From the NCBI RefSeq assembly GCF_041956535.1, contig NW_027192193.1:1231192-1295191 (forward strand): DNA of 64,000 bases. The letters are read 5' to 3'. Positions 24,488-49,666 of the stretch are shown here, one piece after another. The notes under the pieces are model-generated. The model had not been told where the DNA came from, searched no databases, and saw only the letters and a list, made by a program, of their open reading frames with translations. The first letter of the stretch is position 1; each line of letters begins with the position of its first letter. The position numbers and the translations under genes were made by a program. Source of the stretch: Calcarisporiella thermophila CBS 279.70 (lineage: Eukaryota > Fungi > Calcarisporiellomycota).

Positions 24488-25886
24488 GAAGAATCGTACC
24501 ATCGTGTCTGCGCACGTAGATAGGTGTTTATATTTAACGAGATTATTTATGAATCCTACATCCTCGCGTTAATCCCAAAAACAGTGATGTGCTCACTACT
24601 CTTTTTTTTTTCTGTATCATTGTTATATATTCTCTTCCCTTTTCCTAAAATTTCTTTGCGGTTTTTTAACATTCTCATCTAATAAGAGATTTATTTTTTT
24701 CCTGCAATACTTGGCCCATCGTTCTCTTTGAATATTAGTACGAGTGATAATGAGAAATTTTTTTACGCCAAATTCTGTCCTTGCTGTAGTGACACGAGGG
24801 GATGGAATTGGAAGCAGATGGAATAGCTAGCAAGCAAGAGTATTGCTTTTAGGCCGCATTGAAGGGATGGGAGAGCTGGGAATTTTTTTCCTTAGAAAGC
24901 CTGAAAATAAATTATAATACGATGGAAAATAGATGAAATGAAGAAATCCATATCGATAAACTAATAGATGCTATTACACGTTCCAATAGAAAGGGCATAA
25001 AAAATAAACATGCTTCAATATAACAAACTAGACAAGACCCAGTTTGACTGTTTTTTTTTCTATAAATACATATCAATAAACTCTGTGGAAACTGGTACAG
25101 GAAAGGGAATAAACGATTCATAAGGCTTTATTGTGATATGAGACAAATGAAGTGAGGATAATTGTAGCCACCTCCATTAGTGTACGGGCTAACTAAACAA
25201 CTGAGTGTCCGTTTACTAGAGCACAATAGGATGTCGCAAGGGATAAAAATGAAAACACGAAAACGCACTATTTAGGCGATCTGAGTGCATGATTTCATTC
25301 ATATTTACTCATTCAACTGCACTATCCTGTTCAAACCTTCCGGTACAATGAACCTCTCGTATCAATCATCATATTCATTGATATTAAATGATTTATTGCT
25401 CCATTCAACACTGAATAAATCCCTCATTCATTCTAGAACAGGTCAACTAAAACAGATCCCCAGAGGTGAATAAACTTAAAAAACAACGAAAATATCCGCA
25501 TGGTGTGACCATTGACAAGGTGTATTCTTGCAAACAGGATTTCAAGACTATTTCCTTTTCAATTTTCATAGATTGACACCACATTATCAGCTTAACCTGT
25601 TCACTAAGCCTCCACTTTGAAGGCTCTACCTGGGCGCCGGAATTCTACCTTTGCCTAGAGTATACATTAGTGGCTCTGTACTATATTTAGATGGCTGCCT
25701 CATGCTAGAGGCTGATGCTTGAGAAACTTGTGTTTTATTACAATAAAATTATCCAGCCTGGTTGACGAAAATACTTCAATAAATCTTGAATAGTACAATA
25801 TACTACGTAACACTACTAAAAATTAAACTTGTAAAAAATTTTAGTAGAAACAAGGGGATTGTAATATTATTTAACTCAATTGAATG

Positions 25887-26221
25887 TTTTTTTTGATCAA
25901 TCAATGGAAACTTTTATTTAATTTCCATATATTACATGAAGTTAATGTCAATGGACTTAACATAACAAGATATAGGTCCTTGGTAGATAGGCGTTCAATC
26001 GATATGCGTGTATCGTAGTTGTCGTGAATAGCATGTACGTGAAACCGATGTAATCTTTGTACTTATCGTAGGAGGGATCCTTTCAATAATGTAGACTCAA
26101 TTTCTGATCAAGTGGACAGCAGTCACAAACTAAGAGTAAGTGCTGGTGGGGGAAGTGGGATTTGAACCCACGCCGTTCTCATCGGCATACCAGGGATAGT
26201 CCACTACACTAACCCTCCCCC
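25887..26221 (-). mobile_element. tRNA-derived SINE, copy 1
   Basis: Minus strand: tRNA-like head (A box TTAGTGTAGTGG, B box GGTTCAAATCC, ends ..CCCCCACCA), ~250-nt body, TTGATC(A)8 tail. Flanked by direct repeat TAACTCAATTGAATG at 25872-25886 and 26222-26236. Confidence 0.92.
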
Positions 26222-26308
26222 TAACTCAATTGAATGTTTTTATGGTGAGAATTAAAAAAAAATTAAGCAATAAATATCAGCCACTAAAATCCATTTCAAG
26301 CGAAAGGA

Positions 26309-26381
26309 GCTCTGATGGCTCAGCTGGCAGAGCGTCTGCCTAGTAAGCAGAAGGTCCTGAGTTCGATTCTCAGTCAGAGCA
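26309..26381 (+). tRNA. tRNA-Thr(AGT)
   Basis: Acceptor stem GCTCTGA/TCAGAGC; anticodon arm TCTGC-CTAGTAA-GCAGA; T-loop GTTCGATTC; oligo-T terminator follows. Confidence 0.95.
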
Positions 26382-27979
26382 CATTTTTTGTTTTATATAT
26401 TTAATATATAAATGTCTTGTTTTGTATCTTGAATATCATTCATGTAATGTCAGAGTTACCAAAAAAAGTGAAAACAGGAAACACATTCTGCCAAATATTC
26501 CATTCTATTCAAGGCAGTGTAGTATTTTCGTCGATAAGCAATTTTGTAAGTCATCTGCTTTTTCCCCTGTGAAATTTTCTTTTTAATTGGGGTGGGAACA
26601 CGTTGATGGACGATACCGTAGGAGAGGCTGCTACGGGCAAAGAGACGAAATTCCGCGGTGGGGGAGGGGTAGCATCGTTTATTAAAACTAAACCAGGTTA
26701 GTGGCAACCGGTAGTAACAGAGAACAAGTGTAGGTGATCGCGATTTCAATACAAAGCTTGTGTACTCCGTTGTCCTGCATCACACTAATTAGCTTCCTGC
26801 TAAGTGTTTTTATTCTCCTAGGCGGGCATTCGGCCTATACCTGATCTTTGTTCACGTTCTCGCCTTGCTCTAACTATTCTCATGATCACTTAGCCACATT
26901 ATTTTTTGGGGGAGGAGGATGACTCTGCTATAGCTAAGCATACTTGGCATCGAGCAGAATGCAGCTGCACTTGTTAATGTGGTACTAGAAGGTAAACAAA
27001 TAGGCGGGCCACGGTCCAACCAGCATTATTGGTGTGCCGGCATTCCGAAACCACTCGATAGCAGCATCAGACTCCATCGATGGCTTGGTAACACCTAACC
27101 GCTTTCGCCCCTTTCCTGCTCCTCATTTGCAGCAGGTCTTGGGAGCAAGAAGGGCGCGGTACGAAACTCTCCGGCATTGTGCATCCTGACGCGGTCAATC
27201 TCGTTCAAAAATGGGTGGGCATACATTAAAAAAAAAAAAAAGCCAAGAGACTTGCACCGACGGCAAGAGTACTGGACTACAAGGATCATGGTTTGGAAAA
27301 GGGATGTGCCCTCATAAGTTAGAAAGGAGAGCTCCCGTGAAACCAAAAATCCAGTATAGTTTGCGGTAAAAAAAAAGTCGGCGATATGTGCTCCATCTCT
27401 CGATGGATCGGTGTGTTTTCAGCCTCTGCTGCAGCTACTACAATGGCACCGCGATTGACGATACGCGACCGATTTCAGAGGGGCAATAGTGCGAGTGGAA
27501 GAGAGAGGAATTCACGGGACTCGGTGGCTTAATGCATGGCTTCTATTGCCAGGACGAGGGGAAGGGCAGCCAATCCTACCATTTCCAGCCTGTGGCTCTT
27601 ATTATTTTTTCATGGTGATTAAATTTCGAGGAGCGATCACTTATTTTCCTTCACCACCTCATTTGGCACTAGTTTGTTATTCATGGTACGCCGCTCTCAT
27701 CCCGCTACAGATGTAATACAGGTAACATGCATGCGCTCCTCTCGAAACAATGAGCGGAGGAGGCCGGTTGAGCAAGGCCCAAAAATAGAAGAATGGCAAT
27801 TAGTCCATTTGTAGCAAGATTTGGCTTAATTGGGAAGACCCGTTTGTTAAAGAGGAACAGCCCGAAGAAACAGTATTTAAGAGGGGCCGTTTTCCTTCCA
27901 TCCCCCACCACCAACACACAGCTTCTCTTCTCAGCTTTCTCTAGCAATCCCAATTAATATCATCATCATCTTCATCAAC

Positions 27980-28288
27980 ATGCGCGCTCAATTCTCCATT
28001 GTTGCCTTGGCTGCCCTCATTGCCTCCGTTGTCGCCACCGGTGTCAACAACAGCTGCAACAGCAACCAGGAGGTCTACTGCTGCAACACCAAGAACACCA
28101 ACAAGGGTATCGGTGTCTTCACCGGGTGCTCTCTTGTGGACAACGCCGCGATTGCCGCCCTCGGTCTCGCTGCCGCTGTCAACCAGAAGTGCCAGAACAA
28201 GCAGGCCACCGTGTGCTGCAATCGCAACTCGCAAACCGGCGTCGTCAATGTTAGTGCCGCCAACTGCAATTCTCTCAATGTCGCTTAA
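27980..28288 (+). CDS. Hydrophobin-like secreted protein (8 Cys)
   Basis: Signal peptide plus C-X7-CC-X14-C-X20-C-X7-CC-X15-C pattern, 102 aa; strong codon bias; TATA-like TATTTAA upstream. Confidence 0.82.
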   Translation: MRAQFSIVALAALIASVVATGVNNSCNSNQEVYCCNTKNTNKGIGVFTGCSLVDNAAIAALGLAAAVNQKCQNKQATVCCNRNSQTGVVNVSAANCNSLNVA

Positions 28289-29036
28289 ATGTCTGCTTAA
28301 TTCCATGGAAATTCGCGCCAACATTTTCCTTGCTGCATCTTTACTGTCTGATATTTTTTGAACATTTAATGGATGAAGTTGCCTTGTTTGGTTTAATTTA
28401 ACAATAAAGAAATTCTAATATTAAAAACAGACTCGACACGGCCAACGTGGTCAAGCTAGCGGAAATCCAAGCTTCCATTTTGATCCCCTTACAATGTCCC
28501 CGCGGCCCAGTCGAAATGGAGAATGGCTCCAAACCGGTTGAAAGCAATCACCGGGGTCCATTGGGCTGTTCTGTTCAGCTTGGTGGGATGAGTGGCGGTG
28601 GCCCTTTGGCCTGCTTGACCCTCAAAGGGTGGAACCTGATATCCATGTTTGTCTGCACTTTGTGCCCTAAACTTTGAAGAATCACAGGCATGAAGCCGGT
28701 CTAGAATGCCTCTCTTTATTCTATGCCTATTCAAGGGATCCCGAATAGAGAAGAGAATAAAATGAAATGGACGCAAAAAGGAAAACGCGAAAGCAATTGT
28801 ACAACAACTCGTGGTATGTACAAAATATAGAAAAGTATATATGTAGAACAAGGCAAGTAAGTATTGTGTCAGAAAAGGATATAAAGGAAATTAAATAAAG
28901 AGAAGTCAAGGGGGGGGGGGAGGAGGAGAATAAGAAAACGATTCAGTTCTATAAACAAACAAATTAAATGCCGGGGAATAAAATAAGGTAAGTCAAGTAA
29001 ACTAAGAGAAAAGAAAGGCCCGAGGGGCAGAGGAGG

Positions 29037-30954
29037 CTAAAGGTTGTTGGGAGCTATTTGGCTCATTTCAACGCAGACTCCTTCGACCCCCTGGATTTGT
29101 AGACCCGCAAATGCAAAACAAGGTTGAAGTCCGTCAAAGTAGAATGAATTGGGAGTTAGTGTGGCACTAGTGGGAACGGGGTCGCCGAGGGCCGGAAGTG
29201 TGGTGGCAATAGGGGTGGAGTGGTGCGAAGGGGCGGCGGTGCTGGCGGCAGCGGGGGTGGTGATGGCGGAGGTAACGGGGGCGGCCGTAAGAGGCGGAAT
29301 ACTCCAGTCGGAAGTGACTGGGGAGGTGGTTGCGGTGGTAGGCGGCGTGCTGAGCGAAGGATCCACGGTCGTGGAGGGAAGAGGGGCGTCATTCGACTTG
29401 AAGAACGTTTCCGTCTTAGACTTGCCGTGTTTCTGCCTCGAAGGGAAGTTGTTCGGGGTAGCCATGGCTCCTAGCTCGTTCAACTTCAGGCCCACCCATG
29501 CTCCTTGATTGTTCCCGCTCCACAAGGCTGCATCCAATTCCCATCCCACGGCGGTGGTGCCCGAGGGCATGTACCACACGGGATGCTCGGACACCTGTGA
29601 GCCAGGTGAACCGATGGAGTGAGGCGAGCACGTGCCTCCGACTGCCTCCCTGAAGGAGGCCTCTTGAGCAGCTAGCGCGTATGGAATGGAGGGGCTAGCT
29701 GGTTCGAGCTTGGCTGGGTGGTCATTGGCACCGTGCTCGTCATCGCTCTCCCCGGGATAGCACTGTCGTCCATCCGCTTGCGTCATACGGCGCTTAAATG
29801 GGCGACCGATTTCCGCCAACTCAGGTCTCACTGCGAAATGGTAGTGTGAAGAAGGGTGAGATAGGTCCATGGGAGTTGGAGGGAGAGGAGGGGCAAAGAC
29901 GGATTGGGGCTTACCTTCCGGACACGTTTGGGAAATGATGTTGGCAAGCTTGGCCATATGCTCCTGCTGCATGTGGACCTGCCTTGTGAGGCCATAGATC
30001 TCAGGGAGTAGCCTCTGAGATATCAGGGCACTCATATCTTCCACGTTGCGCTGTAGGCCGTAGGCGAGCTGGGTCAACTCACCGAGTGATTTCCTCTTTA
30101 AATTCCCACCACCACTATCGGCGGCGACGGCGGCATCCTCTTCATCGCCCTCTTCGTCCACGCTGGTAGCGCAGACACTAACTGGTCCACTCACCGCCTC
30201 GTCCAATTCATGGTCTTCGTCTGCTTCTTCCGCCTCTTCCTCAGCCTCCGGTGGCGTCTCCTCTTCACCATCCTCTCCTTCATCCGAGGGGCTTTGCTGC
30301 CGCGACACCGGGGCCGCAGTCTTTCGGCGCTTACGAGAAGTTTTGTTCACACGGCGCCGGATCTGCCGCAGGAGATCGTGTCTTCCTCTCCGGAAGCTGG
30401 GATGTGAGAACACGCATGCGTTTTTGTTCTGAGCGTGACGAGATTTGCGGGCGTCGGAGACGCGGTAGAATCCGTATATCTAAGAGAGAGGGGAGATTAA
30501 GTGCCCAGGGTGAGATAGGCCAACTTAGCGGCCCAGGCAGGCTTGCGCAGAGAGGACTTACATTAAGTTGCCGCACAAAGGATGCGAACTTGCAGTGTTT
30601 GAAGAATTTGGGCAAGACATTGGCCGCGAATGCTATCCATCCATGAGCCGATTAGTCAACAGGTCGAGGTTCGACGGGCGAGGAAGAGGGGGCTTCACTT
30701 ACCATCCATCCGCTCGATGATAAAAACAGTCCCGGTGTCGTCCCACCGCAAGTACTCGGCGTACTCTTCATTTTCCAGCAGCCTACCGGCACATGGGATG
30801 GTTAGCATTCCATGCTCCTCACACCTCATCCAACAGGGATGCATGCTTACTGGTATAGCTTGGCCACGAACACCGACACGGTGTCCAAATCAAAGATGCC
30901 AAAGTCGTGGTCGTAGCGGTCGGAGCGAAGGTGACGCGCAATGACCGTCGTCAT
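29037..30954 (-). CDS. HSF-type DNA-binding transcription factor, multi-exon
   Basis: Spliced VFVAKLY/LLENEEYAEYLRWDDTGTVFII/FAANVLPKFFKHCKFASFVRQLN/IYGFYRV...FSHPSFRRGRHDLLRQIRRR, followed by a coiled coil. Confidence 0.88.
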
Positions 30955-31806
30955 GTTCGAGCTTCTTCAGGGGTGAGATGGGGCGATGCGCAATGGGGGG
31001 GCGGTCAGGCTGGGGCGGGTATTTCCTCATACAAAACGACAAGACTTGGGATGAGGCAAAAGAAAAATTTTTCAATCCTGTTTATGAGCTGAGTAACTAT
31101 TTATATTATATTGTGATAAGTTCCAAACTCCCGGCCCACTCAGTGTGTGTTCCCGGCGAACAGAGCATAAAAATATAGGAAGCTGAAGGAGCTGTATCGA
31201 TGAATCCACATGCGGAACCGTGGCCTTGACAGATTTTCGTGCAGATATGGCGTGATAGGCCAATTGGCCTGAGAGCGGCGGTAGCAAGCGAACACTATGA
31301 AAACACGGATAATGAAGCTTATTTTGGGCCTTCATTTAAACTTTTTTGCACGTGAAAATAAGGGGCTTGCTGAGAAGGGCCGCTTGCGGTTAGGCCGCCT
31401 CCGATTTCCGGGTGACGTCTGCGGTTGGCTGCTGCGCTCTTTCAAGCCCCTCCGGCCCCTCCAGCCGCGGCGCCCGCTGCTAATAGCCTAGGGGGCGCCG
31501 CTCTGCGAATGGCGCCGCCGCGAATGGATTAATCCTAACAAGAGGGGCGGCGCGCGCAAGGGTGGCATTGGCCATTTATAATACGAAATCACAGGCGAAT
31601 GGCAGGCGGGGCCAGCCATTCTGCCTAGGTTTAGCCCCTGTGGTGCAGGCCCAACCTAAAAACGTAAACAAAAACTCCCTCGCCAGGCCCTTGGCCCTAG
31701 CACACCCCTTCAAATGGGAGGCCTGCTTTCACATGTTTGAAGGAGGAGGTTAGGGCGAGCGGTGTACCACGCTGGGTTGATATGTCAAAGCATCCAACTG
31801 TCATAA

Positions 31807-31871
31807 TGCGATATTCGAACTGCGATATGCGATATGCGATATGCGTATCTATTTGCCTGTATCGCATATCG
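31807..31871. repeat. Tandem TGCGATA heptamer array with an inverted copy
   Basis: TGCGATA at 31807, three tandem copies plus one degenerate from 31821, and inverted TATCGCATATCG at 31860-31871. Confidence 0.7.
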
Positions 31872-32430
31872 GCTTTTGCCTATCATCGCTTTCCTTTGTC
31901 CCACCTTCCTTTCCTCTGGTCCAACCTCCGGCCCCGGCCAATCGAGCCCTTGCTCGTCGGCAAGCTGCTTGCTCGGCCGGCTGGCCCCCCCCCTCCCCTT
32001 AACTCCTTCTTAACCCCCAAGCGGCAAGCGCCGCTCTCCAAATTTCCCACACTAGCTCCGGCTGGCCCGCCCTTCCCCAGCCGCCCCTCCGCCGGAGCAA
32101 ACGCCCTAGCCAGGTTTCTAGCTTTCCAACCTTCTCAATTTTTCTCGGCCAGCTTGAAACCAGAAGGTGCCACGAATTGAGGTAAATAAAAAAAGAAAGT
32201 ATATTCCCTAACACGGCCAACCTTAAGGTGTGCCAACTCCCTCGGGGGCAAGGGAAAGATGGGGCTATTTGAGTCAAGCCGCATGGCGAGTCTCATGCGG
32301 CCGCAAAATTCCGCAATCTTTATTTCTCTAGCTGGATTAGCTCTGTACATAAAAAACAAGAAACTATACGCTCCCCGTTTGGAAGGAGGGGCGGCGCAGC
32401 CGGGGCTGCTTGGGCCTCGGAAGGGGACAT

Positions 32431-33086
32431 TCAGGCGCGCTGGGCATGCTTCTCTACAAACTCACGCACGAATTTTACGCCCTGCGCTCCCACAAATTTG
32501 TCCACCGGCTCGCCCTTGTGAAAAGCAATCTACCATGGATGCATGAAATCATAATTAAAGTAGGTTAGAACCACGCGCTTTGTTTAATTGAATTTTTTTC
32601 GTTCACGTCGACGTACCACCGTAGGAAGCGCAGTCACCTGCAGGAATGCCGCAACAAAGTAGAGACGGGCTGGTTAGGTCGGCTCCGAGGAGAGGGCCGC
32701 TTGGGCAGAGGGGAAGAATACGAGAGAGCTTACCTTGTACTTCATGGCGAGATCAGCAGCCTCATCGGTGTCAAGCTTCACCATGGTCACCTTCTTGTTT
32801 GCCTCCACTTCCTTAGCCAGCGCGGGTCCGAGGACTCGGCACGGGCCGCACCAGCTGGACATGGAATGAAGAATGAGGTCAGCTAATCTGGAACTTTCTG
32901 TGGACCTGAACAACCTTATGCTTACTCGGCATGGAAGTCAACAATCACGGGCTCCTTGGCTTTGAGCACCAAATCATCAAACGTTTCGTTGGTGGCCACG
33001 TGCACCTTGCCCGTCAATGCTGCACGGGTGGTGTGGAACAGGGCAACATTACGGGCACCGACGACTATACGCAGACAGTAATGCAT
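32431..33086 (-). CDS. Mitochondrial thioredoxin, 4 exons
   Basis: Presequence-like N-terminus (RNVALFHTTRAAL); VIVDFHAD/WCGPC; VTALPTV/IAFHKGEPVDKFVGA. Confidence 0.9.
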
Positions 33087-33706
33087 GGTTAACGATATTG
33101 GAACTAAAACCTAGGAAAAAGAGGCAAAAGCGGATCCGAAAGATCTTTACCGGAAAGCGTTCGAGACAATAAGCGCAATGACATGTTTATGAATATCTTT
33201 CCTACTAGTGTAAGATGGTACCGAATGATCTAGAGTCGAATGTCGAAAGTGGAAAAGTATCAATAATTGGAAAAATCTCGCGTAATTATGTGACTGCGCT
33301 TTTGTCAAGCAGAGCCCACAAATGCGAAGTAGCTTCGGCACGGTAGGGCCGTGCGAGAAAACGAACATAGGAGGAGTAGATTCGAAGACAAACGAACAAG
33401 AAAGCAGCGAACAGAAGGTGGACTTGGAGAGGGGTGTGGCCCGGTGCATTCCCTCTATCATGAAGGGAAAAGAAATATTCCTCCAATTTTTATTTTTATG
33501 AACGGAGATTTCATATAATTAGATCTCTTGTTAATAAAGACAAGGTGCAAAGAGGGGAAAGCAGAGAAGGACACAATCAGTCTATCATTTCTATTGAAGA
33601 CAGCGGCATCCTCGAGGATGAAGGGGGCGATATCATTACCTAATAGACATGGAGAAGGGGGAGGGGATGGAGGGCACTCAAAAAGGGTAGCTAACAGCCA
33701 CTTTAT

Positions 33707-33979
33707 TCATGCCCTCGCCTTCCGCTTTTCAACCACCAATCGCCCCGCACTGTACTCTTGGCTCAGATGCGTCTGGCGCTGTAGACTCTGCAGCTCCTTT
33801 TCCGCCTCTCGTACCAATGCCTCGATCTTCAAAGGATCGGTCTCGTTCCGATGGGCGCGGAATAGCTCCTTGGTCCGGCGGAGGGCGTGATCTCGGAAAT
33901 TATAAGAAGTAAAGCCGGAGGCAGTCCGAAGAAGATGGCGGTAGAGGTGTAGTATTTGCGTGGAGGTAGGGGGAGGCAT
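33707..33979 (-). CDS. ISD11: LYR-motif protein ISD11/LYRM4 (Fe-S cluster biogenesis)
   Basis: ILHLYRHLLR...FTSYNFRDHALRRTKELFR...LQRQTHLSQEY...LVVE. Confidence 0.88.
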   Translation of the reverse strand: MPPPTSTQILHLYRHLLRTASGFTSYNFRDHALRRTKELFRAHRNETDPLKIEALVREAEKELQSLQRQTHLSQEYSAGRLVVEKRKARA

Positions 33980-34296
33980 CCTCACAAGAAAATACAAAGA
34001 GTGCCTAAAGTAGAGATGAACGGAGCTACGACTATCCTAATATGCTTGTCCAAGAGCCTCAAAATAGTAGAGCTTGACACGGCCAAGATGGAGTGACAAT
34101 ACAAACCAAGGTAATGGGATTCAGCGCAGTGGCAAAAAGTCAACTGCAATAAGGTGTTAAAATAATTCGATCGCTTTCGTTTGGCCGCTTGCGAAAACTT
34201 CGTCGAATCAGTGGCTTGTGAAATGGTGTATCTTCTCTATCCCAGTGGCCTCGAGATTATCCTTTCAACGGGAAACAAAACATCACACCCATCGCC

Positions 34297-38100: not shown

Positions 38101-40281
38101 TTTGCGCGACTTCGGATCGAGAAGAGAGAGCCCCACCAGCAACCGCTCAGTGCGCATATCGTCGTTGTTGTCGAGAGGGAAGACGCTCTCCTGCAACGAC
38201 TTTTCCAAGCATGCACTAACCTCCAAAATTATCAGTAGCTCTACAAGGATTTCCAGATAAAACTACGTACATTGCTTCCGCGTCATTAGTGTACACAACA
38301 TCCATCAGTGCAGACAGTATCCAGTCGAACTTTTTCATCACCGACCGGTTACCTGCAGCTCTATCATAGGGTCAAGCAAGAGGGGAGAGCGGGGGCAAGG
38401 ATAAATTCAATATGATCGATGAAAAGCATTGGAGAAGCAAACTCACAATTCAGTATAGGCCAAATTATAAAGTCGCCCACATGCTTTGATGGCTTCTTGT
38501 TGTACAGGATGCTATATTGGATCCGCCAACCGAGAATTCGTAAGCAAGTTACAGGTCAAGTGAAATGTGTAAAACATAAGTAGCGAGGGAGATTTACCCG
38601 TCTGTCTTTACATCTTTTTCCTACCGCTTGGAGCAGCAGCTCATCCACATTTTGCAATACCACCATATACTCGAGCTGCCCCACCAGCTTGCACACGGTA
38701 GCTCGGATTTTTTCGTCAGGATCGAGCACTTTATCAAGTAAAGCATCTAAAGTTGACACATCCAACGTCAATAAGAAGTCCGTTGAGAGAAAAAACCCAA
38801 TGGCGAATTGGGTGGGCACCCCTACCACATATATCTTTGGAGAGATTCGGATGGTTTTTCAAAATCGGTATGCAAAGCTCACACCATAGCTGTCGTATGG
38901 CCGAATTCTTATCTTGTTTTCTAAACGTAAAGAAAAGATGAAGGGGAACGTCGCTTTGAGGGAGAAAAAAAAAAGCACCCCTAACCTCTGCAGCCAGGTT
39001 TTCCAGGTGGTTGGATAGTTGAAGGCAAGCATAGAGCCCGGTTCGCCAAACATTCCCCCAAGGACCCGAGTTGAAAGGCCGCGCAGATTCATGTCGTCGA
39101 CGCGCATTTCTTCCTCCAGCTGCGGGATTACATTGAGGAGCAATCCGGGGGCAACCCGATTTAGCTCGAGGATGAGATCGTGTGCCACTCGAAACTCTCG
39201 CAGATCATCTTCACTGATTTCGCCGTCGATAGCATTTAGAATGACTTCGGAAAAATACTATACGTAGGACGGGAAAAATGCGTTAATGGATGCAGTAAGT
39301 GGATAGCCCGCAGCTAAGACGACTTGCCTGCCCTATATATCGCTGTAATCGATCGGTGCATGCCCTACATAGCCCTGCCGCCAACTGATAGGCAACCGGG
39401 TTTTCTTGCTAAGATCCAACCAAATGGGTTCAGCGTCTACCACCCCCATCCCGAACTGTTCCACACCCAGGCTTACCTGTCGTTTTTTCAAGAACTGTGC
39501 TAGAATAATGACCACTGCGTCTTGAGGTAGAGGGGCGCACTCCTCTATCAAAAGCTCTAGAATATCGGACATGTACTTCCTGACTTCCTCAGGTAGTTGT
39601 GGGCTAAAGAGAAAAGCTCGGTCAGAGGGCATACTTCACCTCCATGAACATTCGACTTGCCTCATGATATCGAAAAAATCTCGGAAGACTTCCACGATCA
39701 TTTGATCGGCGTCGTCCAGATCGGCAATGAGGACAACGCTTTTCACTGTCGATAAACTCTCGAGCAAGTAAAGCTGATTCTCGTAGTTGGGATTCGAAGG
39801 ATTACGAATGTCGCGTAGAATTTCGAAGAAAAACTCGAAAATACGCTATAAGGGGAGGGGGGGGGATAGAAGAGTTGAGCTGCAACAGGGCATAAGCCGG
39901 AAAGAGATCCATCCTTAATCAACCTTGAGGGTCGTTTCTTTGTACGGGGCCTCAGGGGCATATAACCGAAGCAAATCCGCGAGCGAGCACGCCACAAGGG
40001 ACCGCACTCGCTTGTCCTTGTGCGAGATCAGCGATCGATGCACGAGATCATTTGTGATGCGTTTCAGGGATCCTATGTTTATCTCTCCCTGCTCTATGCT
40101 GGAGAGCTCCTCGTTCAATCGCTACCATTAAGGCCAAGAATTAATTAAAGCCCAAGTTTGAGAGTGAAACGTTAGGGGAATTTACTTTCAGGCGCGAAAT
40201 AAGCTCCGTGGTGGAGATAGAGCTCGACGAGACCAGTGGCAAGCTAAACTTGAGCTTTTTCAATGATCCCGACCGACTCAT
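35140..40281 (-). CDS. PDS5: Sister chromatid cohesion protein Pds5, many exons
   Basis: HKDKRVRSLVACSLADLLRLYAPEAPY, LLLNVIPQLEEE, LDPDEKIRATVC, HLRLRAARSLLKLA, LHLLAHHPDF. Confidence 0.92.
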
Positions 40282-40763
40282 GGTTGCTTTTGCTGACAAT
40301 GACCCGCCTAAATGGGTTAAAGGGAGGGGGGTGGGGTGGGGAGGAGTGGAAACGCGATTTTTTTTTCAAAGTCGCGTTGAAACACGAATGAGCTGTGCCT
40401 CATCACCATCATTTAACATAAAAAGAGCCGAGGGTGTCGCAGTGAAATAGCGAAGGATTCTATAGTGAAGTCAAATAGGGGGAACCCCCCGTTGAAACAT
40501 GATTTGTCAAAGTGGCGGATACAGTCCACCTTCCTACTACATAACAACTTCAATAATAGCCATTTCCTCGGTCTGGCAATACAAAAAAGATCAAGGAAAA
40601 TACAACATTGAAAAAAACACAACCAATATATATATATATCGTGAATAGAATGGGAGGTGAAAAGTGGGAATAGCCTTCAAGCTCCATACATAATACCATA
40701 CCGCGAAAATAAGGATAAACAACAATGATACTTCATAACATTAAGTGTCTTCTAGTAGCACGT

Positions 40764-42739
40764 CTACTGCTTCTCCTCCTCCTCCACCCCCTTCTCCATC
40801 TGTGCCTTTCTCCTCCGCAGCTTCCTGATAAGGCCGATTTCCTCCTCTCGTTCCTGCTCAAAGTAGTCCAAGCTCTTCCCTTTGGTTTCGGGTATAAGGG
40901 GAGTGAACAGACCACCCACGAACATCACCGCGGCAAAGATCCCCAGTGTCTGGGGTAGGAAGGCATGCTGGCCAGGCTCTCCTCCGACCTCCACCAATAA
41001 GTTAAATCCGAACGTGGCCAGGATGGCGCCAAGCTTGCCGGCCGCTGCACTGATGCCGTGGGAGGTGGCACGGTAACGGGTGGGGAACACCTCAGCCGCC
41101 AAGACAAAGGTCGTGGTGTTGGGTCCGAACTGGAAGAAGAACTGGGTAACGGCGAAGAGCACGATAAAGGCCGCGATGGAATTCTGCTGGATTTGGTGGA
41201 AGAAGATGGCCAGAATGGCAAAGAGGATCGCGGTCATGAAAAAGCCGATGTATTGGATGGGCTTGCGACCACTTGAAAGGGCAGAAAGGTAGGTTAGCAT
41301 TAGCGGAAGGGCCGAAAACGATGGAGGGGAGGGAAAAATACTCACAGTCTCTCGATCAAGAACACGGAGGCGTAGTAACCAGGCAGTGCGCCCAGAACGG
41401 ATATAATCAGGTTGCCCGTCGCCTGTTTGAAGAGGGTGTCCCAAGGATTCGAGCCGCCGGCGAACCCGATTGCTTGCAGCACATAGGCCTGGTTGAGGGC
41501 GATCCCGTAGAAGGCAATATCAAGGAGGAACCAAGTGATCGAGGTGCCGAGCAAAACTCGAAGATTGCGCCACTGGCTGTAGTAGTGGCGGAAATCGCGC
41601 CACTGCTCAGCGGCCCTATTTTCTGCCTGGGGTGCGGGGGAGTTGGCGGGCTGAGTCGCAGTATCCTTTACCTCGCTAGTGGTTTGAGGCTTGATGTCTT
41701 CCTCGGAGGCCGAGTCGTTGTTCTTAGCGCTTTCATTTGGCCCGATGGCGTCCATGGCCCTCTCCTCATCCTTCAGGACGTCCTTGGTGTATCGGGGGGA
41801 TTCTGGGAGGGAGAGGCGACTGTAAACAGCTGGAGAAAGAGAAAGAAAACAAACGTCGTCAGCCTCTTGAGGACCCCGAGAAGAGAGGTCAAAGGATATT
41901 TACTGAGGAAGGAGGGAATGGCCCCAAGGCCGATGCACAGTCTCCAAACATAGTCGATATTCAGTTGGTCGGCCTCGATGGCGCCCCGGAAAATAAGCAA
42001 GAGGATGGTGGTGACGACGCAGGCGGTGAAGTTGCCCAGACCCTGCATCGAGAACACAAGGGACATCATCTGGCCACGGCGGCCGCGCACAGCCCTAGCA
42101 TTGGAAAACGAGAACAGAAGCGCAAGGGTTAATGACGCAGGGGGGGGGGAGGGGTTAAGAAAGGCCGAGCACGCGCTGCCTACCATTCAGAGGTGATAGT
42201 GGCGGACATGGGGTAGTCTCCACCGATGCCGATCCCGAGGATGAACCGCCAGAAGAACAGATAGCCTATTGCGCTCACGCCGCGGACGGCCGACGAGGCC
42301 GTGGCACAGAAGATAGTGGCGACCACGATGATGATCAGCTCGAATCCATAAATGGCCTTGCGTCCATAGGCTACAGGTAAGTAACAACAAAGCGGCGACG
42401 GCCGCCGTTAGTAGCCAGGAACGGGAGCGGCCAGGGGCGAGGGGCCTACTTACTATCGCCGATGTAACCGAACAACAGCTGCCCAACAAAGGTTCCGAAG
42501 GTGACCATTCCCTTTAGCGGACCCTCCACCGCCGGCGGCATGTGGTTGCCCATGCCCGCATAGTACACAAAGCCAAGCATGGGCGAGACGAGATTCATAA
42601 TGAAGATGTCATAAGCGTCCGTAAAGAAGCCCACGCTGGAAATGAGCACGGTGCGAATCTGCCGCCAGGTGAGCTTGTCGGCCCGCTCGAGCTCGGAGAG
42701 AGAGACTCTGCGAGCCATGTCCTGTTGCTGATGGGGCAT
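40764..42739 (-). CDS. PHO84: Pho84-like MFS inorganic phosphate:H+ symporter
   Basis: GFFTDAYDIF, GIGIGGDYPMSATITSE, SMQGLG, WFLLDIAFYG, QFFFQFGPNTTTF, FPTRYRATSHGISAAAGKLGA. Confidence 0.93.
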
Positions 42740-43903
42740 TTGGATGAGTTGGTGGGAGAGAGTTCAGTCTAGCAGCAGCAGAGAACAGGGGTCAATAAGG
42801 GGCTCAGCGGAGCGAATCAGGGGCAGGAGACGGGCAGAAATGGGGCGGCCAAGAGCAGCTGCAAAATGCCAAAGATCTTACCGGTGATGAGTGGACAACC
42901 TTGCGACGCACTTGTCTATTTTTGTTTTCTGTTGTTGTGGTAGAGTTCGGTGCCCAGAAGAAAAGTGCTTAGAAGGGAGCCGGAGGGTTTATATGCACCA
43001 AGTCACAGCTCCATCAACAAACCCTCGGGCAAATCCAGGCCGGGCGCAGATCGAGTTTAACGCAAAAAAGGTTCGCTCGCCTTGAATCCCTTTTTCCGTT
43101 TTCACGCTCCGACCAAACCAGTCTGGCCCGGAGAAAGCTTTCAACAGCGCCGCGAACCAATGGCGCCCGGAGCGCTCGGCCCTACGCGCTTATCATAGAG
43201 AGCCGTGCGTTTTTTCCCAGCCGCCAGCCTTCGGTGCAATTTCCCAGAACGCCCAACGCTCAAAGAGGTCGGGTTGCGCGAGAGCTTGCATCCAGGCGCC
43301 AAGCCACCCACGCACTCAATACCGCCCGCTCCTCCGCGGCTGTATGCAAGCATCAATGCCATGCAGCGTGCGGGCCCTGGCCAGCTCCAAAGGAGGCTCG
43401 GTCCGGGCCGGAACTGGTAGAGTCTCGTGTCGGCTGGGAGAGACGGCCCAAGTATTTCAAAGGGCCGAAAGGGGCGTGCACCAATTCCACAAGTATTTGG
43501 GCAGGTGATAAATCTAAGTTTACTTAACGGATATTTATACCCGCGATTACAGAAATTGGAATGAACGTTTCAGTGGACCTCGCTCGGATACTGAAATTCT
43601 AAGCCAGCCCCCTCGCAAATCCAGGATCCATAGCTGTGCTAGCGTGTAGAGGCGTCGGCTGAAAATTTCTGCTCAACACCAAGGAAAAAATAAAAGATCA
43701 TAATAGTGAACATGACTCGGAATAACTTATTGCTTTATTGAATATGGCAAGTAAATGTCAGTGTTTTTTTTTGGAGGCCTCTGTACATGGGTCAAAGGAA
43801 AGAAAATAGAAGGCTCAAGAGAATGCTTAAAAACAGGTTACTCTAACTTTGATTTAGCTACACAGCCAAAAAAAAAAAAAAATGAAAATGCTACTCAGAA
43901 TGA

Positions 43904-44191
43904 CTATGCTACAAATCTCCCCATCACGGGATCCCAGTTTTCTTTCCCTCTCGTAATTTCCTGCCTGTGTTTGTGCATTATGAACATATTTCCTTTGGTG
44001 CTCTTCACCTGGAGTGGAGAGCGGGTGGTTCGCCTTCTCATGGCCCTACGGTGGAAACTTCGATTCCGAGAAAAGCGAACAGGAGAATCATGGCTATAGC
44101 CCGAAGGGTATCGAAGCAGGAGATCAGGGAAGGGTGATGAAGGGTCAAGGAGAAGAGCAATGGAAGAAATGCTAACTAAACTACTCTCCAT
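43904..44191 (-). CDS. Possible small basic hypothetical protein
   Basis: Open 95-codon frame from ATG 44191 with T-rich flanks; no family recognised. Confidence 0.3.
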   Translation of the reverse strand: MESSLVSISSIALLLDPSSPFPDLLLRYPSGYSHDSPVRFSRNRSFHRRAMRRRTTRSPLQVKSTKGNMFIMHKHRQEITRGKENWDPVMGRFVA

Positions 44192-44711
44192 GGGCGAAAT
44201 TGCTTTTAAATTAAACGACGACGATGGCAAAAAAAAAAGAATGGAAGCAACTGTGTGCGTGTGAACTAACAAAGGGGCTAGAAAGATAAACAAGTTGAAG
44301 AGAAAAGAGGAAAAAAAAAGAGGCGAGGGACAGCGTGGTGAAACTCTATATGTCGATCAGAAGAGGATACATTGCGATTACCAATTGTGCTTATATTAAA
44401 CTCATGAAAACACGTCTTCGAATTAAAATTGGGTGCTTCCAACAGGCCGATTGCACGCCAAAGGCAATGGGCTGTGTTTTATATTCAACCTCGCCTCGAT
44501 AATAGAATCAGGATAAGAGCAACTAGGCTTTTCTTTTTTTTTTGTTTGGTACAGGATGCAATGATAGTTTCTTGTAAATTAAACAAAAAAAAAGTTGGTC
44601 AAATTGGCAATATTTCTCGAATTCAACGGTACCAATGACCAGCAAAATAAACAGTACCCGCAAATCAATAGCCAAGCTATTACGATGAAGACGAAAGATA
44701 AAAGGAAAAAA

Positions 44712-44785
44712 TGTTTTCGTCCGGGTTCGAACCGGAGACCTTACGCGTGTGAGGCGTACGTGATAACCAACTACACCACGAAAAC
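44712..44785 (-). tRNA. tRNA-Val(CAC)
   Basis: Reverse complement GTTTTCG...TACGC-CTCACAC-GCGTA...CCGGTTCGAACCCGGA-CGAAAAC-A; T-run terminator. Confidence 0.95.
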
Positions 44786-44869
44786 TCCTTCGACCACGAA
44801 AGTTGAATTTGGAAAATCTATATAATTGCATCTTTTTTATACTGGCAGTCACGGCGACCTCGCATAAGA

Positions 44870-45035
44870 ATTTGGAAGGCACAGTTGTTAAGAGCCCCGG
44901 AGCTTAACCATTGTGTGCTGGGTTCGATTCCCAGAAACGGCACCCGTCCATGAGAGTTTGCCGGGTTTTTCTCAGGACTTAACCGCTATCAATAGTATAG
45001 CAACAAGCAAGTAATATCAAGCGGCTACAAAAATA
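44870..45035 (+). mobile_element. Degenerate tRNA-like head, putative second SINE family or tRNA pseudogene
   Basis: A-box-like GGCACAGTTGTTAAGAGC; perfect T-arm CTGGG-TTCGATT-CCCAG (44918-44934), then AAACGGCACC. No matching 5' acceptor strand; 3' boundary and TSD uncertain. Confidence 0.5.
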
Positions 45036-45237
45036 GGTAGCAAAAATTTTTAGGAGAAATCCGACTACAGAGATGGGAGGCCAGGGGCAGTACCTGGGTG
45101 ATTTTGACGTAGAAGTCTACCCTTCCATTCCCTTCAGATAAAAATCATCAAGTGGATGTAAAAAACACATCCCAAGGGGAAAAAAACCTTGCATAACAAT
45201 ACTCTTTAATAAAGAGCCAAATGGACGGCAACCCGTG

Positions 45238-45345
45238 CAAGTGGACAGCATTCACAACTAGATGTTAGTGCTGGTGGGGGAAGCGAGATTCGAATCTTCG
45301 CCGTTACCTTTGGAATCCCTAGGATAAATAGGAGAACACTAGTCA
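45238..45345 (-). mobile_element. Degenerate partial copy of the tRNA-derived SINE (head plus start of body)
   Basis: CAAGTGGACAGCA..AGTGCTGGTGGGGGAAGCGAGATTCGAATCTTCGCCGTT aligns to both full SINE copies. Confidence 0.8.
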
Positions 45346-46159
45346 TTGAAACCAGGATAAGAGAATTGATGGTAATGATATTCGGTGTAGATGCGTTGAA
45401 GTTAGATGTTTTAGGTGAAGAAGATCCCGTCAGCTTGTATTTGTGTCCATTCTCCCCTGTACAACGCTCTTTGAGCTCTTTTTCTATCCAAAAAGAATTA
45501 CCGTGGCTCAAAACCGCGAATTCGCTAAGGCGCTGGTCCGCTGCTTTTTCAATCTAGCTGGTCCGGCATATCTTGTGGACTCTTCTGGAGAGTATGCCAA
45601 ACTTTAGGCATTTTGTCAACTCTTTGCTGGTAGTGTGCAAGGGCTGGGCGGTCAAATAATGCGTGGGCAATGGATTCAGAAATCCCTGGAGAACATCTTT
45701 TATAGGTGTTTGTTTCTTCATTTATTTGCTAGAAATAGTACCGGCGATAGTTACGATTTTATACTTCAGAAGTCTTTAATAAACGTTGCTACGCTTGGAC
45801 TCTGATGAACATGGAAAGAAAATTAGAAGGGGAGGGCCGAATCCATCTAAATTATCATTAAGACTTTCCCTATTGATTCTAATTTGGCTCCAGTTTTTAT
45901 ATCCTGTCGTAGAAGGTTCTACATGTCCTCCTCTGGGCTTTTTAAGGTTGTAGAGAGGATACAAGTTCAAGTTGGCGGAAATAACGGGACGAAAATAAAG
46001 GAGAGATTTTACTAATACCAAGCTTGGCTTATACATGCTCTTTGTATGCAATAGAAATGGTAGACGCATTTAATTTTCATTTTAGCCTCTCGGTTGCAAA
46101 TATTGTATTCACTGTTTATACAGTAAATCACGAGTAATTCTGCATTTTTTCAAAGAAGT

Positions 46160-47149
46160 TCATCGTGGTTTCATATCTGTATTATACTCGATGTCATATT
46201 GATCCCATGAGCCCTCCTCTACCTCCTCCTTCACGTCCAAAATGACAGCATCTTCTGTTATTTTGGCGGCAATCACTTTAACATAAGTATCGCCGATGTT
46301 GACATCACACCCGACGAGTTGAGCTGCCTTGCAAAGCAAGGAGATAGCCTCCTGCAAAAGTATCAAAATGATACTCAGCCTGGTCATCAAATCGACCTTA
46401 AATGCACAATACTTACACTCTTCGATTGTTTTCCACTGTGCTTTTGAACTCTCTTTGGAATAATGCGTTGAGCTGCACTGGAAACCGACGAAATAAGTTT
46501 CTACAAGAACTAAATATGGGAGTAGGTAGTCATATCTCTCTAAACCATGCTTGAATTTCTTACGCCTTTCGTTCGCTTTTCAATCCGCTGATGAGTCTGT
46601 TTCGGAATATAGGGGGCTTCTGAAGACCGTCCGCTTTGCTTTTTCTTACTATTCTCTGGCCTTAAGAGGAAAGATGACTTTCACTTCACCTCCCGTATAT
46701 CAATCGTATTTGAAATATCGCCTACTTACAAGAGTGATGATAGCAATTTGCGTGCTTCATGCTGATCGCACATGCTGCTAATATCAGTGCAATACTTCAC
46801 TAATAGTCTAAGCCTCTTATCTTCCTCATTACAGGCTCTATTGAATACGTTAGCTGTATCTCAGCTGGAGTATAATACCAACCCACTCACTTTATCGGAT
46901 CATAATTGTTAGCCTCACATTTAGCAGGGTCGAGATACCTTTGTCCATATTTATCGGTAATCTTGTACGATTGATATTCTCGAGCTGCCTCTTCACTATC
47001 TCTAAGAATGTTCTTGCATTCTGTTTATCAAAGTATATCAAAAGATATTCAGTAGAAGATGAAAATGAAAAAAAAGCAAAGATTTGGGTTATCTAATGCC
47101 TACGATTTATTAAATACTCGATGTCCAGGGGAGTATTTCCTTCCGACAT
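46160..47149 (-). pseudogene. Cryptic 6-exon gene of unknown family; 3' continuation (to ~45400) looks decayed
   Basis: Five GT-AG introns splice into MSEGNTPLDIEYLINQCKNILRDSEEAAREY...EAISLLCKAAQLVGCDV...DMKPR*. Downstream frames contain protein-like stretches broken by stops. Confidence 0.5.
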
Positions 47150-47706
47150 TGGGATAGCTAGGGAATGATTTTGGGAATTACTTTGGTTGGCTTTTCGAGA
47201 AAACTTATTCTTTACTTATATATCAGTTTTTTTTCATATTCTGAATCCTAATCTAATTGAGTGGGTTCATAAAAACTCAATTGCGATCAGATAGGAAACA
47301 GAGGAAAAATACATAACTATAACTTAACTGATTAAATTTCATTACAACACAAAGCTAGGATAAAAATATTAGACAAATCGTTTTGTGACCATTAGAGAGC
47401 TACGTACTGACCCACTATTGCTCTTATCTCTCTTAAGATAAAGGCACATCACTTGGATGTTAAGACAAGATATATCACACCCCATCCTGAGTCATTATGG
47501 TCATGAACCTAGAATAATCTCTTTGTTTGGTTTATGCACGCTCTTTGTATGCGATAGAAATTCATTCATTCTTTGTTCATGCTTTAACCTAGTGATAACG
47601 AATATTGTATTCGCTGTATATAAACCAAGAGAAAAATCCGCAATGCTTCAACCTCAACATGGTTTCATTTTAGTATCATTTTTTACATATACATAGAAAT
47701 AACAAA

Positions 47707-48071
47707 ATGCAGGCAGTTAGAGAAAGTCCTGATAGATTTGGTCATTGGATAATCCAATATGACCTAGGACGGAAGGCTTTAACTGAATCCTACGGCTCAC
47801 ATAACGGCATTATAGGGAAATTGCCGTCATCCTCAACGAGTATGGCTATATACGGGTTCAGCAGAGCATATACCGGCATCGAGATGGATGCCTGCTTGCA
47901 CAAGTGCTGATTTACCTTGCCATTATTCGTACTTTACTATGGATAAACGGCGTGTCTCCAAACGGAGACCCTCACCTTATAAGCATTCGTGTTTCTGTTC
48001 AGGACGCTGATTATATGGGCTTTACTCCATTTGTTCGTGGAGGAGACATGCCCGTTATTCCTCTTACTTGA
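47707..48071 (+). pseudogene. VapD/Cas2-like endoribonuclease with one frameshift near 47803
   Basis: Frame 1 WIIQYDLGRKALTESYG joins, after a 1-nt frameshift, RHYREIAVILNEYGYIRVQQSIYRH...IRTLLWI...ISIRV...MGFTPFVR. This is colinear with the VapD pattern (hhhFDL...Y.DI..hL..aGF...QGShY...W....hR....DFT.Fh). Confidence 0.68.
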
Positions 48072-48220
48072 GCATGTGAGGAGAGAGAATTTGCCTTTAT
48101 TGATGTACCAATTGCTCTTGGTTCTTTAGTAAAATCGTCAAGAAAAACTAAGCAAAACAATAGAGAGAGTCTAATGTAAGCTGGTTTTTACAGAATTGCT
48201 TCTTCTTGTCGAAATCCATG

Positions 48221-48466
48221 TTTTTATTTATCATTAATGAGTCTTTATTGTTTGAGGAGACTCTCAATAAAACACAGTAGCTACGTTAGTGAAAGGAATA
48301 AAATGAAAGAAAAACTAAGAATTAAGACACATCATTACACTTCGCTGAGTATCAGATAAGTCTGCTAGTATTAGATTATGAGCATTCAGCACATGAGTAT
48401 TCTGGGAGCCCGCGATGGTGCTGATACACCTCTCCGTCCACTTGCCACTGTTGTAAGTTTGGGACA
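48221..48466 (-). mobile_element. Older degenerate 3' fragment of an L1/Tx1-like LINE
   Basis: Aligns to 48680-48958 (TCTTTATTG tail; TTCTGGG..GATGGTG.TGATACACCTCTCCG.CCA..TTGCCAC..GTTT.GGACA); eroded poly(A). Confidence 0.7.
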
Positions 48467-48679
48467 ACCTTATTTTATTATAACTTTATTATATCGAAAT
48501 GATGCCATTTTATTACTTTTATTATTATTTTTCCCTATGTGATACTATAACAATAGTATAAAAGACTGATATTTCATTTACAATAAAGATGTGCTTTAGT
48601 GATTATCCGATTACACAATCATCCTTTGCATCATCTAAGGCTTCTGAAGTGGTGGATATAGAGCGATAGAGGGAGCTTC

Positions 48680-49159
48680 TTTTTTTGATCAATAAAGAAT
48701 CTTTATTGTTAAAGAGATTCTAAAGTACAAAAGTCACATTATTGAAGGTATTAAAATGAATGGGAAACTAAACATAAACGCGACTATATAGCTTGAGGCA
48801 TGTTGATCATAACGATTTTCAGTTCAAATAGATAGATGAATTTGGGTTACATCTCCTAGAATGAGGTTGCGAGCGGTCAGCACCTGTATATTCTGGGGGC
48901 CTGTGATGGTGATGATACACCTCTCCGCCCATTGCCACACTGGTGTGAGTTTAGGACATTCGAAGAAGGTATGGCGAATTGTCTCTTGAAGCGTTACATT
49001 GGGTGCACTTCTGGTCGTGTCCAGGAAAGGTCGAGTTGGTAATTACACGCTCTACGAGGATTCGCCAGCGTAGTATGCGATGTTTTGGGAGAGTTGGTCG
49101 TTTTTGGATGGAGGCCCAGACTTTTTCCCACTCCTTTGCCGTGGGGGTGGGTCGCGAAA
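48680..49159 (-). mobile_element. 5'-truncated L1/Tx1-like non-LTR retrotransposon 3' end (zf-RVT region plus tail)
   Basis: Minus translation EWEKVWASIQKRPTLPKHRILRWRIL...CTQC.../ETIRHTFFECPKLTPVWQW (one frameshift); terminal hairpin CAATAAAGATTCTTTATTG then ATC(A)7. Confidence 0.82.
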
Positions 49160-49499
49160 TTTTTTTTTTTTGATCAATTAATGGAAACTTTTATTTAATT
49201 TCCATATATTACATGAAGTTAATGTCAATGGACTTAACATGACGAGATATAGGTCCTTGATCGATAGACGTTCAATCGATATGCGTGTATCGTAGTTGTC
49301 GTGAATAGCCTGTACGTGAAACCAATGTAATCTTTTGTACTTATCGTAAGGGCGATCTTTTCAATAATCAAGACACAGCTTCTGATCAAGTGGATAGCAG
49401 TCACTAAATAAGAGTAAGTGCTGGTGGGAGAAGCGGGATTCGAACCCACGCCGTTCTCATCGGCATCCCAGGGATAGTCCAATACACTAACCCTCCCCC
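49160..49499 (-). mobile_element. tRNA-derived SINE, copy 2
   Basis: Roughly 92% identical to copy 1 by manual count. Intact B box GGTTCGAATCC; (A)12 tail; perfect 15-bp TSD GGGTGGGTCGCGAAA at 49145-49159 and 49500-49514. Confidence 0.93.
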
Positions 49500-49581
49500 G
49501 GGTGGGTCGCGAAAAGCTTGGGAAATAATTTTTGAAATTTTGTGTATTAAATAGGTTTCCAAAAACCCAGAATTAACAAAT

Positions 49582-49666
49582 CCGGCTATAGCTCAGCTGG
49601 TAGAGCGGAAGACTGTAGTGATCCATAGCAATCTTTAGGTCCCTGGTTCGAATCCGGGTGGCCGGA
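49582..49666 (+). tRNA. tRNA-Tyr(GTA) with ~12-nt intron (~49619-49630)
   Basis: Acceptor CCGGCTA/TGGCCGG; D-arm GCTCAGCTGGTAGAGC; GAAGA-CTGTAG[intron]A-TCTTT; T-loop GGTTCGAATCC; T-run terminator. Confidence 0.94.

Follow-up and report, generated by a model that had tools for sequence, protein, structure and literature searches.

The sequence analysed here is a window of 64,000 nt from Calcarisporiella thermophila CBS 279.70 (contig NW_027192193.1, positions 1,231,192 to 1,295,191 of the forward strand), and its subject is a set of short and long interspersed nuclear elements (SINEs and LINEs) lying upstream of tRNA genes. Three tRNA genes were called in the window with ARAGORN and Rfam. The repeat finder returned one element of about 335 nt in two copies (25887-26221 and 49164-49499; identity 90-95%), which was named SINE-A. 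In both copies the G-rich, tRNA-like 5' end is turned towards a tRNA gene and the poly(A) lies at the other end. Both are bounded by perfect target site duplications (TSDs) of 15 bp, which differ from each other. An earlier note, made from the sequence alone, had claimed two independent SINE copies with differing TSDs, head-to-head with tRNA-Thr at 87 bp and with tRNA-Tyr at 82 bp, and this was found to be exactly so. The tRNA-like head that it had seen at a similar offset from tRNA-Val proved to be the 5' end of a different SINE, SINE-B, 87 nt away. SINE-A copy 2 was inserted at the 5' end of an older 5'-truncated LINE (48679-49159), and a still older LINE fragment lies behind it. All coordinates were listed in Table 1.

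The genome of C. thermophila comprises 28.2 Mb in 116 contigs, and NCBI taxonomy places the species in Calcarisporiellomycota, in agreement with the early-diverging fungal host named in the earlier note. A genome search with SINE-A gave 183 candidates, and the best 30, ranked by query similarity alone and thus picked regardless of tRNAs, were retrieved with 1.5-kb flanks. Many stretches of the fetched loci were masked as N. The SINE and LINE matches listed by the genome search represent part of the total, and counts resting on them are lower bounds. In 20 of the 30 SINE-A loci, the nearest upstream tRNA was divergent (opposite strand) and lay 77-112 bp away. For the 19 copies with a placeable 5' end, the distance between the 5' ends of SINE-A and tRNA had a median of 85, a mean of 87.6 and a standard deviation (SD) of 8.4 nt. 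The partner tRNAs covered about a dozen amino-acid specificities, including Thr, Gly, Pro, Asp, Ile, Phe, Ser, Val, Leu, Cys and Tyr.

The same relation was seen when the SINE-A head was located genome-wide by exact matches to a 15-nt pattern, which gave 96 heads (reversed-pattern control, 0). TCGAAC, the reverse complement of the B-box core, occurred 128-158 nt upstream of 45 of these 96 heads, where about 0.7 were expected by chance, and tRNA genes in reverse complement are plainly recognizable in the matched strings. GTTCGA, used at equivalent spacing as the same-orientation control, was found at none of the 96. Starting from the tRNA side, the 63 best-scoring tRNA genes were cross-matched by hand with the list of SINE-A heads; a divergent head was present 80-90 bp upstream of at least 12 of them, two further tRNAs had a head at about 390-400 bp, and for at least ten others the upstream region contained, among the matches listed, a SINE-B or LINE fragment on the strand opposite to the tRNA. 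The association of SINE-A with tRNA genes was thus confirmed to be far above chance. The plot of distance and orientation that the earlier note had proposed peaks sharply at a distance of about 80-100 bp for the divergent orientation, and targeted elements always point away from the tRNA gene.

TSDs of 12-23 bp were found in 22 of the 30 SINE-A copies. Because nearly all of them are different, the loci represent independent insertions and not duplicated modules. The few repeated TSDs (L014 with L027, L017 with L029) belong to separate insertions at the same position of a shared upstream repeat. Although tRNA genes are clustered on some contigs, which might suggest that whole tRNA-plus-SINE modules were multiplied by duplication or gene conversion, this explanation is refuted by the TSD and spacer data and retains practically no probability: the partner tRNAs differ in identity, the spacers are unrelated, and every SINE has a TSD of its own, outside of which the tRNA lies. 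Pairwise identity among 31 SINE-A copies (the 30 loci and window copy 2) was 90.4-99.4% with a median of 95.2%, and the family has therefore been active over a long, recent period. The age of the copies also bears on whether insertions might occur at random and harmless tRNA-upstream copies then be selected. Such an origin would suit a compact genome of 28 Mb, in which tRNA flanks are classic safe havens; however, the pattern is already present in young copies (pairwise identity up to 99.4%), and selection cannot account for insertions confined to about 20 bp, for their uniform orientation or for the reuse of one nick. We regard it as highly improbable.

The insertion distance was held whatever the underlying sequence. 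The 80 nt nearest to the tRNA are sometimes unique DNA and often the start of a long terminal repeat (LTR) beginning 9-22 nt from the tRNA. With no change in its distance from the tRNA, SINE-A was inserted in position 63 of LTR_y (L017, L029), position 176 of a reversed LTR_x (L010), position 68 of LTR_x (L013) and about position 70 of the U1 LTR (L002, L006, L012). In each case, 16 bp of LTR sequence were duplicated on both sides of the SINE. Intact copies of the same LTRs at L020, L003, L018, L044 and L052 represent the paralogous empty sites. Furthermore, the distance was 88.1 nt for tRNAs of 71-76 nt and 86.7 nt for those of 82-86 nt; since it is the same for both classes, its reference point is the 5' side of the gene rather than the B box. 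The TSDs have no common motif apart from a tendency to begin with A, which is the first base in about three-quarters of the clean TSDs and suggests a mild preference for a primer able to pair with the poly(A) tail.

These data also address the possibility that a sequence-specific endonuclease recognizes a motif in repeated tRNA-upstream DNA, such as LTR termini or blocks containing GCAGTCAC, and that the fixed distance comes from the repeats. Conserved blocks (U1-U4) are indeed common to several tRNA upstream regions, and insertions were found at identical block positions for L014/L027, L017/L029 and L002/L006. However, the same distance was used in unrelated unique DNA (window copies 1 and 2, L003, L011, L022-L024 and L030), different LTR families, positions and orientations served as targets, and the TSDs share nothing but the tendency to start with A. 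A motif-reading endonuclease is therefore largely refuted and very unlikely. The proposal of the earlier note that targets are chosen by distance and not by sequence agrees with the same distance being used in unrelated DNA and at different LTR positions.

Serial insertions reuse the same nick positions, which produces oriented stacks. For example, one T-rich TSD occurs three times at L046, upstream of tRNA-Leu: between a truncated LINE and a longer one and at the outer end of each. At L024, a single TSD in three occurrences belongs to a SINE-A and to two tail fragments, one of SINE-A and one of LINE-C, and at L004 one TSD is present twice. The latter locus (C8:1144428-1147761) gave a distance of 110-112 bp by two measurements, and a micro-insertion of 14 nt was found there between tRNA-Pro and SINE-A. 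It consists of TGATC, the last five bases of the element tail, followed by A9, and is flanked by the same 17-bp TSD as the adjoining SINE-A. The micro-insertion is an extreme 5' truncation and the record of a separate event of target-primed reverse transcription (TPRT) at the same nick. Most of the outlying SINE-A loci were likewise explained by element stacks or by displacement through solo LTRs. A 253-bp solo LTR lies between tRNA and SINE-A at L009 (332 bp), and two solo LTRs at a single GTTA site account for L020 (579 bp). L012, L016 and L028 (215-499 bp) are divergent with repeats in between, and at L007, L013 and L021 same-orientation pieces of LINE, SINE or LTR were found upstream, followed by masked N.

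LINEs were found at the same sites. Searches for the reverse transcriptase (RT) and with the second open reading frame (ORF2) as query gave about 290 candidate LINE fragments in the genome. Three lineages occur in the stacks, namely LINE-A (L046, L040), LINE-C (L041, L047) and LINE-B (L043); at the amino-acid level, ORF2 of LINE-C is about 62-79% identical to that of LINE-A, and ORF2 of LINE-B about 40%. The domains RVT_1 and zf-RVT were detected in ORF2, the APE match was weak in L041, and PF03372 was found in the annotated paralogue P0002. ORF2 thus has the APE, RT and C-terminal cysteine-rich domain of an L1-clade LINE. Its best solved relative is human L1 ORF2p (E 1e-78), aligned over query residues 10-762, which run from the C-terminal part of APE through the linker and the RT. 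Poly(A), variable 5' truncation and TSDs within the usual LINE range of about 7-20 bp were found at L046, L024 and window 48679-49159. 5'-truncated LINEs occupy the same tRNA sites at L046 (84 bp), L048 and window 48679-49159. In a quick FastTree analysis with long branches, lineages A, C and B grouped together with an SH-like support of 96 against the 38 closest database proteins, and three metagenomic elements were their sisters.

The SINEs were linked to these LINEs by their 3' ends. The last 60 nt of SINE-A and the LINE-C tail are 84% identical and form a hairpin with one compensatory pair, followed by the terminal GATTGATC and poly(A); LINE-A ends similarly in a hairpin, CATTGATC and poly(A). 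SINE-B, with 218 candidate copies in the genome, has 55 nt in common with the LINE-B 3' untranslated region (UTR) at 89% identity. The SINE-A head is composed of an acceptor stem and a T-arm with an A-box-like TAGTGTAGTGG and the B box GGTTCAAATCC, both boxes being good, and the B box of SINE-B is GGTTCGATTCC. The elements thus combine a tRNA-related head carrying the A and B boxes for RNA polymerase III (Pol III) with a 3' end common with a LINE, are non-coding, and have TSDs and an A-rich tail, as is typical of tRNA-derived SINEs. The LINE plus SINE system postulated in the earlier note therefore stands, with L1-clade LINEs at the same sites and 3' tails common with the SINEs.

Taken together, the LINEs and SINEs show oriented, distance-specific integration that has the hallmarks of TPRT and is independent of target sequence. 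We consider it very likely that this integration is actively position-specific, and it is probable that an L1-type non-LTR clade (LINE-A, LINE-C and LINE-B) with tRNA-derived SINE families integrates by TPRT at a fixed position upstream of tRNA genes. From the geometry of the TSDs, the priming nick would be placed on the tRNA-sense strand at the tRNA-proximal TSD edge, about 67-71 nt upstream, with the second nick some 15 nt more distant from the gene. The analogy with TRE5-A and Ty3 suggests that a LINE protein may dock at the tRNA gene on the pre-initiation complex of Pol III (TFIIIB and/or TFIIIC), which would serve as the ruler. SINE RNAs would use the LINE machinery via the common 3' end, and at least two SINE families bearing Pol III promoters would be mobilised in this manner, SINE-A with the LINE-C/A tail and SINE-B with the LINE-B 3' UTR. 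That the tether is TFIIIB/TFIIIC as such, which is suggested by the analogy, has in our estimate about an even chance. The SINE riders prove that the targeting specificity acts in trans.

The main rival to contact with a Pol III factor is guidance by chromatin, in which the endonuclease would cut at a feature imposed by the tRNA gene, for instance where the nucleosome-free region ends or at the first positioned nucleosome, in the way that nucleosomal DNA upstream of tRNA genes is read by Ty1. The site at about 70-85 bp upstream lies beyond the usual TFIIIB footprint, and the distances are scattered over 77-112 bp with an SD of 8, both of which would fit such a feature. However, there is one sharp zone, unlike the periodic window of about 1 kb of Ty1, the orientation is strict (45 versus 0), and the same nick is reused to the nucleotide. 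Moreover, Ty1 too requires contact with a Pol III subunit (PMC5911963). Guidance by chromatin is thus unlikely, if less so than the explanations considered above.

Several observations weigh against position-specific integration at Pol III genes through a shared 3' end or give it no support. In one of the 30 SINE-A loci (L018) the SINE was inserted within a SINE, and for two of the 30 copies (L005 and L025) no tRNA was found in the visible flank. Among the matches listed, no elements were found near U6 (C30:253305), a single gene, or near the two tandem 5S genes of C31. At G000:C5:1186711-1186848 (plus strand), a weak 5S-rRNA-like match of 47.8 bits has a divergent SINE-A head just 9 bp upstream; it misfits the 85-bp rule, and might represent a SINE head derived from 5S or a 5S gene that was disrupted. 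The 3' hairpins were thermodynamically insignificant alone when tested by shuffling (z -1.2 to -1.9).

Table 1 Features of the window, followed by example sites of LTRs and shared upstream blocks
Feature	Position	Strand	Length	Remarks
TSD of SINE-A copy 1, distal copy (TAACTCAATTGAATG)	25872-25886		15 bp	
SINE-A copy 1	25887-26221	minus		tRNA-derived head (A box, B box, acceptor stem and ACCA), body, 3' hairpin, ATTGATTGATC, poly(A)
TSD of SINE-A copy 1, tRNA-proximal copy (TAACTCAATTGAATG)	26222-26236		15 bp	
tRNA-Thr(AGT)	26309-26382	plus		divergent, 87 nt to 5' end of SINE-A copy 1
tRNA-Val(CAC)	44712-44785	minus		ARAGORN, Rfam
SINE-B	44872-45186	plus	315 nt	divergent, 87 nt from 5' end of tRNA-Val
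SINE-A-like head fragment	45256-45326	minus		75% to SINE-A head; points away from tRNA-Val
LINE-B-like ORF2 remnant	45485-45716	minus		tblastx
Older 5'-truncated LINE 3' fragment	48215-48450	minus		decayed tail; contains one of two D4 repeat copies (48346-48440)
5'-truncated LINE (A/C lineage)	48679-49144	minus		C-terminal part of ORF2, 3' UTR, hairpin, TTATTGATC, poly(A)
TSD of SINE-A copy 2, distal copy (GGGTGGGTCGCGAAA)	49145-49159		15 bp	
SINE-A copy 2	49160-49499	minus		including poly(A)
TSD of SINE-A copy 2, tRNA-proximal copy (GGGTGGGTCGCGAAA)	49500-49514		15 bp	
tRNA-Tyr(GTA), intron-containing	49582-49667	plus		divergent, 82 nt to 5' end of SINE-A copy 2
Solo-LTR examples	L009:1820-2175; L020:1820-2420; L017; L010; L012; L044:5400-5900; L052:1850-2300			
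U2/U4 block sites	L014; L027; L004; L019; L048; L009; L020; window 44786-44871			

Some further features of the elements were recorded. In the window, no partner tRNA was detected to the right of the SINE-A-like head and LINE-B-like remnant at 45256-45716, which may be the leftover of a stack with a lost tRNA gene or an off-target event. The head of SINE-A copy 1 (26144-26221) ends in the acceptor 3' strand followed by ACCA, and the source of the SINE-A head may have been a mature tRNA with its CCA tail rather than a tRNA gene. Upstream of tRNA-Glu, a dense nest (L018/L044; C3:45589-48925) contains a 5'-truncated SINE-A at 85 bp and, inside it, a second SINE-A in opposite orientation whose TSD consists of SINE sequence; further SINE-A pieces, LTR_y, U1 and a LINE-B remnant were also present.

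Probable full-length LINE-A copies were located at G000:C3:773688-778498 (minus strand), C10:209600-214300 and C22:587500-593400. The copy on C3 has an open frame of 1372 codons, perhaps inflated by masked N, with a weak ORF1-like match upstream. Weak matches to ORF1 of the sister element L053, in which the RRM/CCHC hits are themselves weak, adjoin the LINE-A ORF2 at C3:778301 and C22:588317. A 277-aa ORF1 in L050 (contig C78, 2976 nt; VTP21DRAFT_11346) was considered as the ORF1 of the targeting lineages and was rejected because its LINE is unrelated, with an ORF2 identity of 23-26%; in the FastTree analysis, the LINE of contig C78 falls far outside the A/C/B group. A search of 5.8 billion proteins gave no homologue of VTP21DRAFT_11346, and Pfam gave no hit. 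The closest outside relatives of the targeting lineages (P0003, P0005, P0006 and P0014; 30-34% identity; L053-L056) had no tRNA in the available flanks, their contigs being barely longer than the element or consisting of LINE arrays. In one of these, an ENA metagenome contig of 14.9 kb (L054), three L1-type LINEs from a distantly related lineage are arranged head-to-tail in one orientation, reminiscent of serial insertion at one site, with no tRNA within the locus.

Solo LTRs of several families, in either orientation, have their start 9-22 bp upstream of many tRNA genes; in some cases they form a stack at a single GTTA site. LTR_x is about 253 bp long (TGTCATA...TATGACA) and LTR_y 242 bp (TGTTGG...TAACA), and U1 exceeds 400 bp and has TATA and AATAAA signals. 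These solo LTRs look like the result of Ty3-type targeting of the tRNA start site. Blocks U2 and U4 lie upstream of tRNA genes with different identities; they start with TGTTAC or TGTTGT, and in them GCAGTCAC precedes the SINE junction by about 17-25 nt. Probably these blocks too are LTR termini, interrupted by LINE/SINE insertions. With the solo LTRs, the genome has an inner LTR zone and an outer LINE/SINE zone at its tRNA genes, as formed by DGLT-A and TRE5 in Dictyostelium.

In a 2018 review, non-LTR elements targeting tRNA genes are listed for dictyostelids only (TRE5 at 44-54 bp in opposite orientation, TRE3, NLTR-A and NLTR-B), the amoebae to which studies of such integration have been confined according to that review, and the tRNA targeters listed for fungi are all LTR elements (PMC5911963; also PMC5006619). 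Full-text literature searches yielded no account of transposons in Calcarisporiella or of non-LTR elements that target tRNA genes in fungi. Like the elements described here, TRE5 of Dictyostelium discoideum (TRE5-A/B/C) and NLTR-B of P. pallidum belong to the L1 clade of non-LTR elements and possess APE, RT and a zinc-binding domain (PMC5911963, PMC5006619). The likeness extends to integration upstream of tRNA genes in opposite transcriptional orientation, which was found at the SINE-A loci, to a defined distance, to TPRT with TSDs and to the many 5'-truncated copies. Dictyostelium similarly has a compact genome and a Ty3-like LTR targeter nearer to the gene, DGLT-A. The two systems differ in host, an amoebozoan and a fungus, respectively, and in distance, since TRE5 inserts at about 44-54 bp whereas here the 5' junction lies at about 85 bp (range 77-112) with a first nick placed by TSD geometry at about 67-71 bp, outside the TRE5 range. 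Furthermore, tRNA-derived SINE partners share the targeting here and none are listed for TRE5, and at least three diverged LINE lineages are present here, unlike in TRE5. For TRE5-A there are binding data for ORF1 and TFIIIB, whereas the tether proposed here is drawn by analogy.

Other elements resemble the present system in part. Ty3, Ty1 and the other fungal LTR targeters of tRNA genes (Tj1, Tca8, Tyl3/6 and Ylt1) use integrase and not TPRT; Ty3 inserts at the transcription start site and Ty1 in a broad nucleosomal window, and neither has a fixed orientation, whereas the orientation is fixed here. R2, Keno/Mutsu/Dewa of the Tx1 clade, and Utopia are also non-LTR elements confined to RNA-gene loci, but they cut a specific sequence in the gene or repeat, whereas here arbitrary sequence outside the gene is cut at a measured distance. 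In stringent LINE-SINE pairs, such as UnaL2/UnaSINE1 of eel, a SINE with a tRNA-derived Pol III head has a 3' end with a hairpin homologous to the LINE tail. The pair described here differs in being also position-specific for tRNA genes, and the homology between SINE-A and LINE-C is just about 60 nt long.

On balance, we favour the view that an L1-clade lineage in an early-diverging thermophilic fungus gained a Pol III-gene ruler independently of the dictyostelid TREs, early enough for a split into three targeting lineages about 40% identical in ORF2, and that it spawned SINEs which inherited its position and orientation specificity. With Ty3-like LTRs at -9 to -22, there would then be two concentric landing zones at every tRNA gene, a second independent instance of the DGLT-A/TRE5 arrangement. 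With a second, probably independent system, the way in which TPRT machinery reads the pre-initiation complex of Pol III could be tested by comparison, the ruler length being about 70/85 bp here versus about 48 bp in the dictyostelid system. C. thermophila is thermophilic, and its Hsp104 has already been used for cryo-EM; the LINE proteins and TFIIIB/TFIIIC of such a host are perhaps unusually tractable for structural work. The oriented, chronologically ordered stacks are a natural record of retrotransposition history for each tRNA gene, and the inner LTR zone and outer LINE/SINE zone together form a striking parallel to Dictyostelium.

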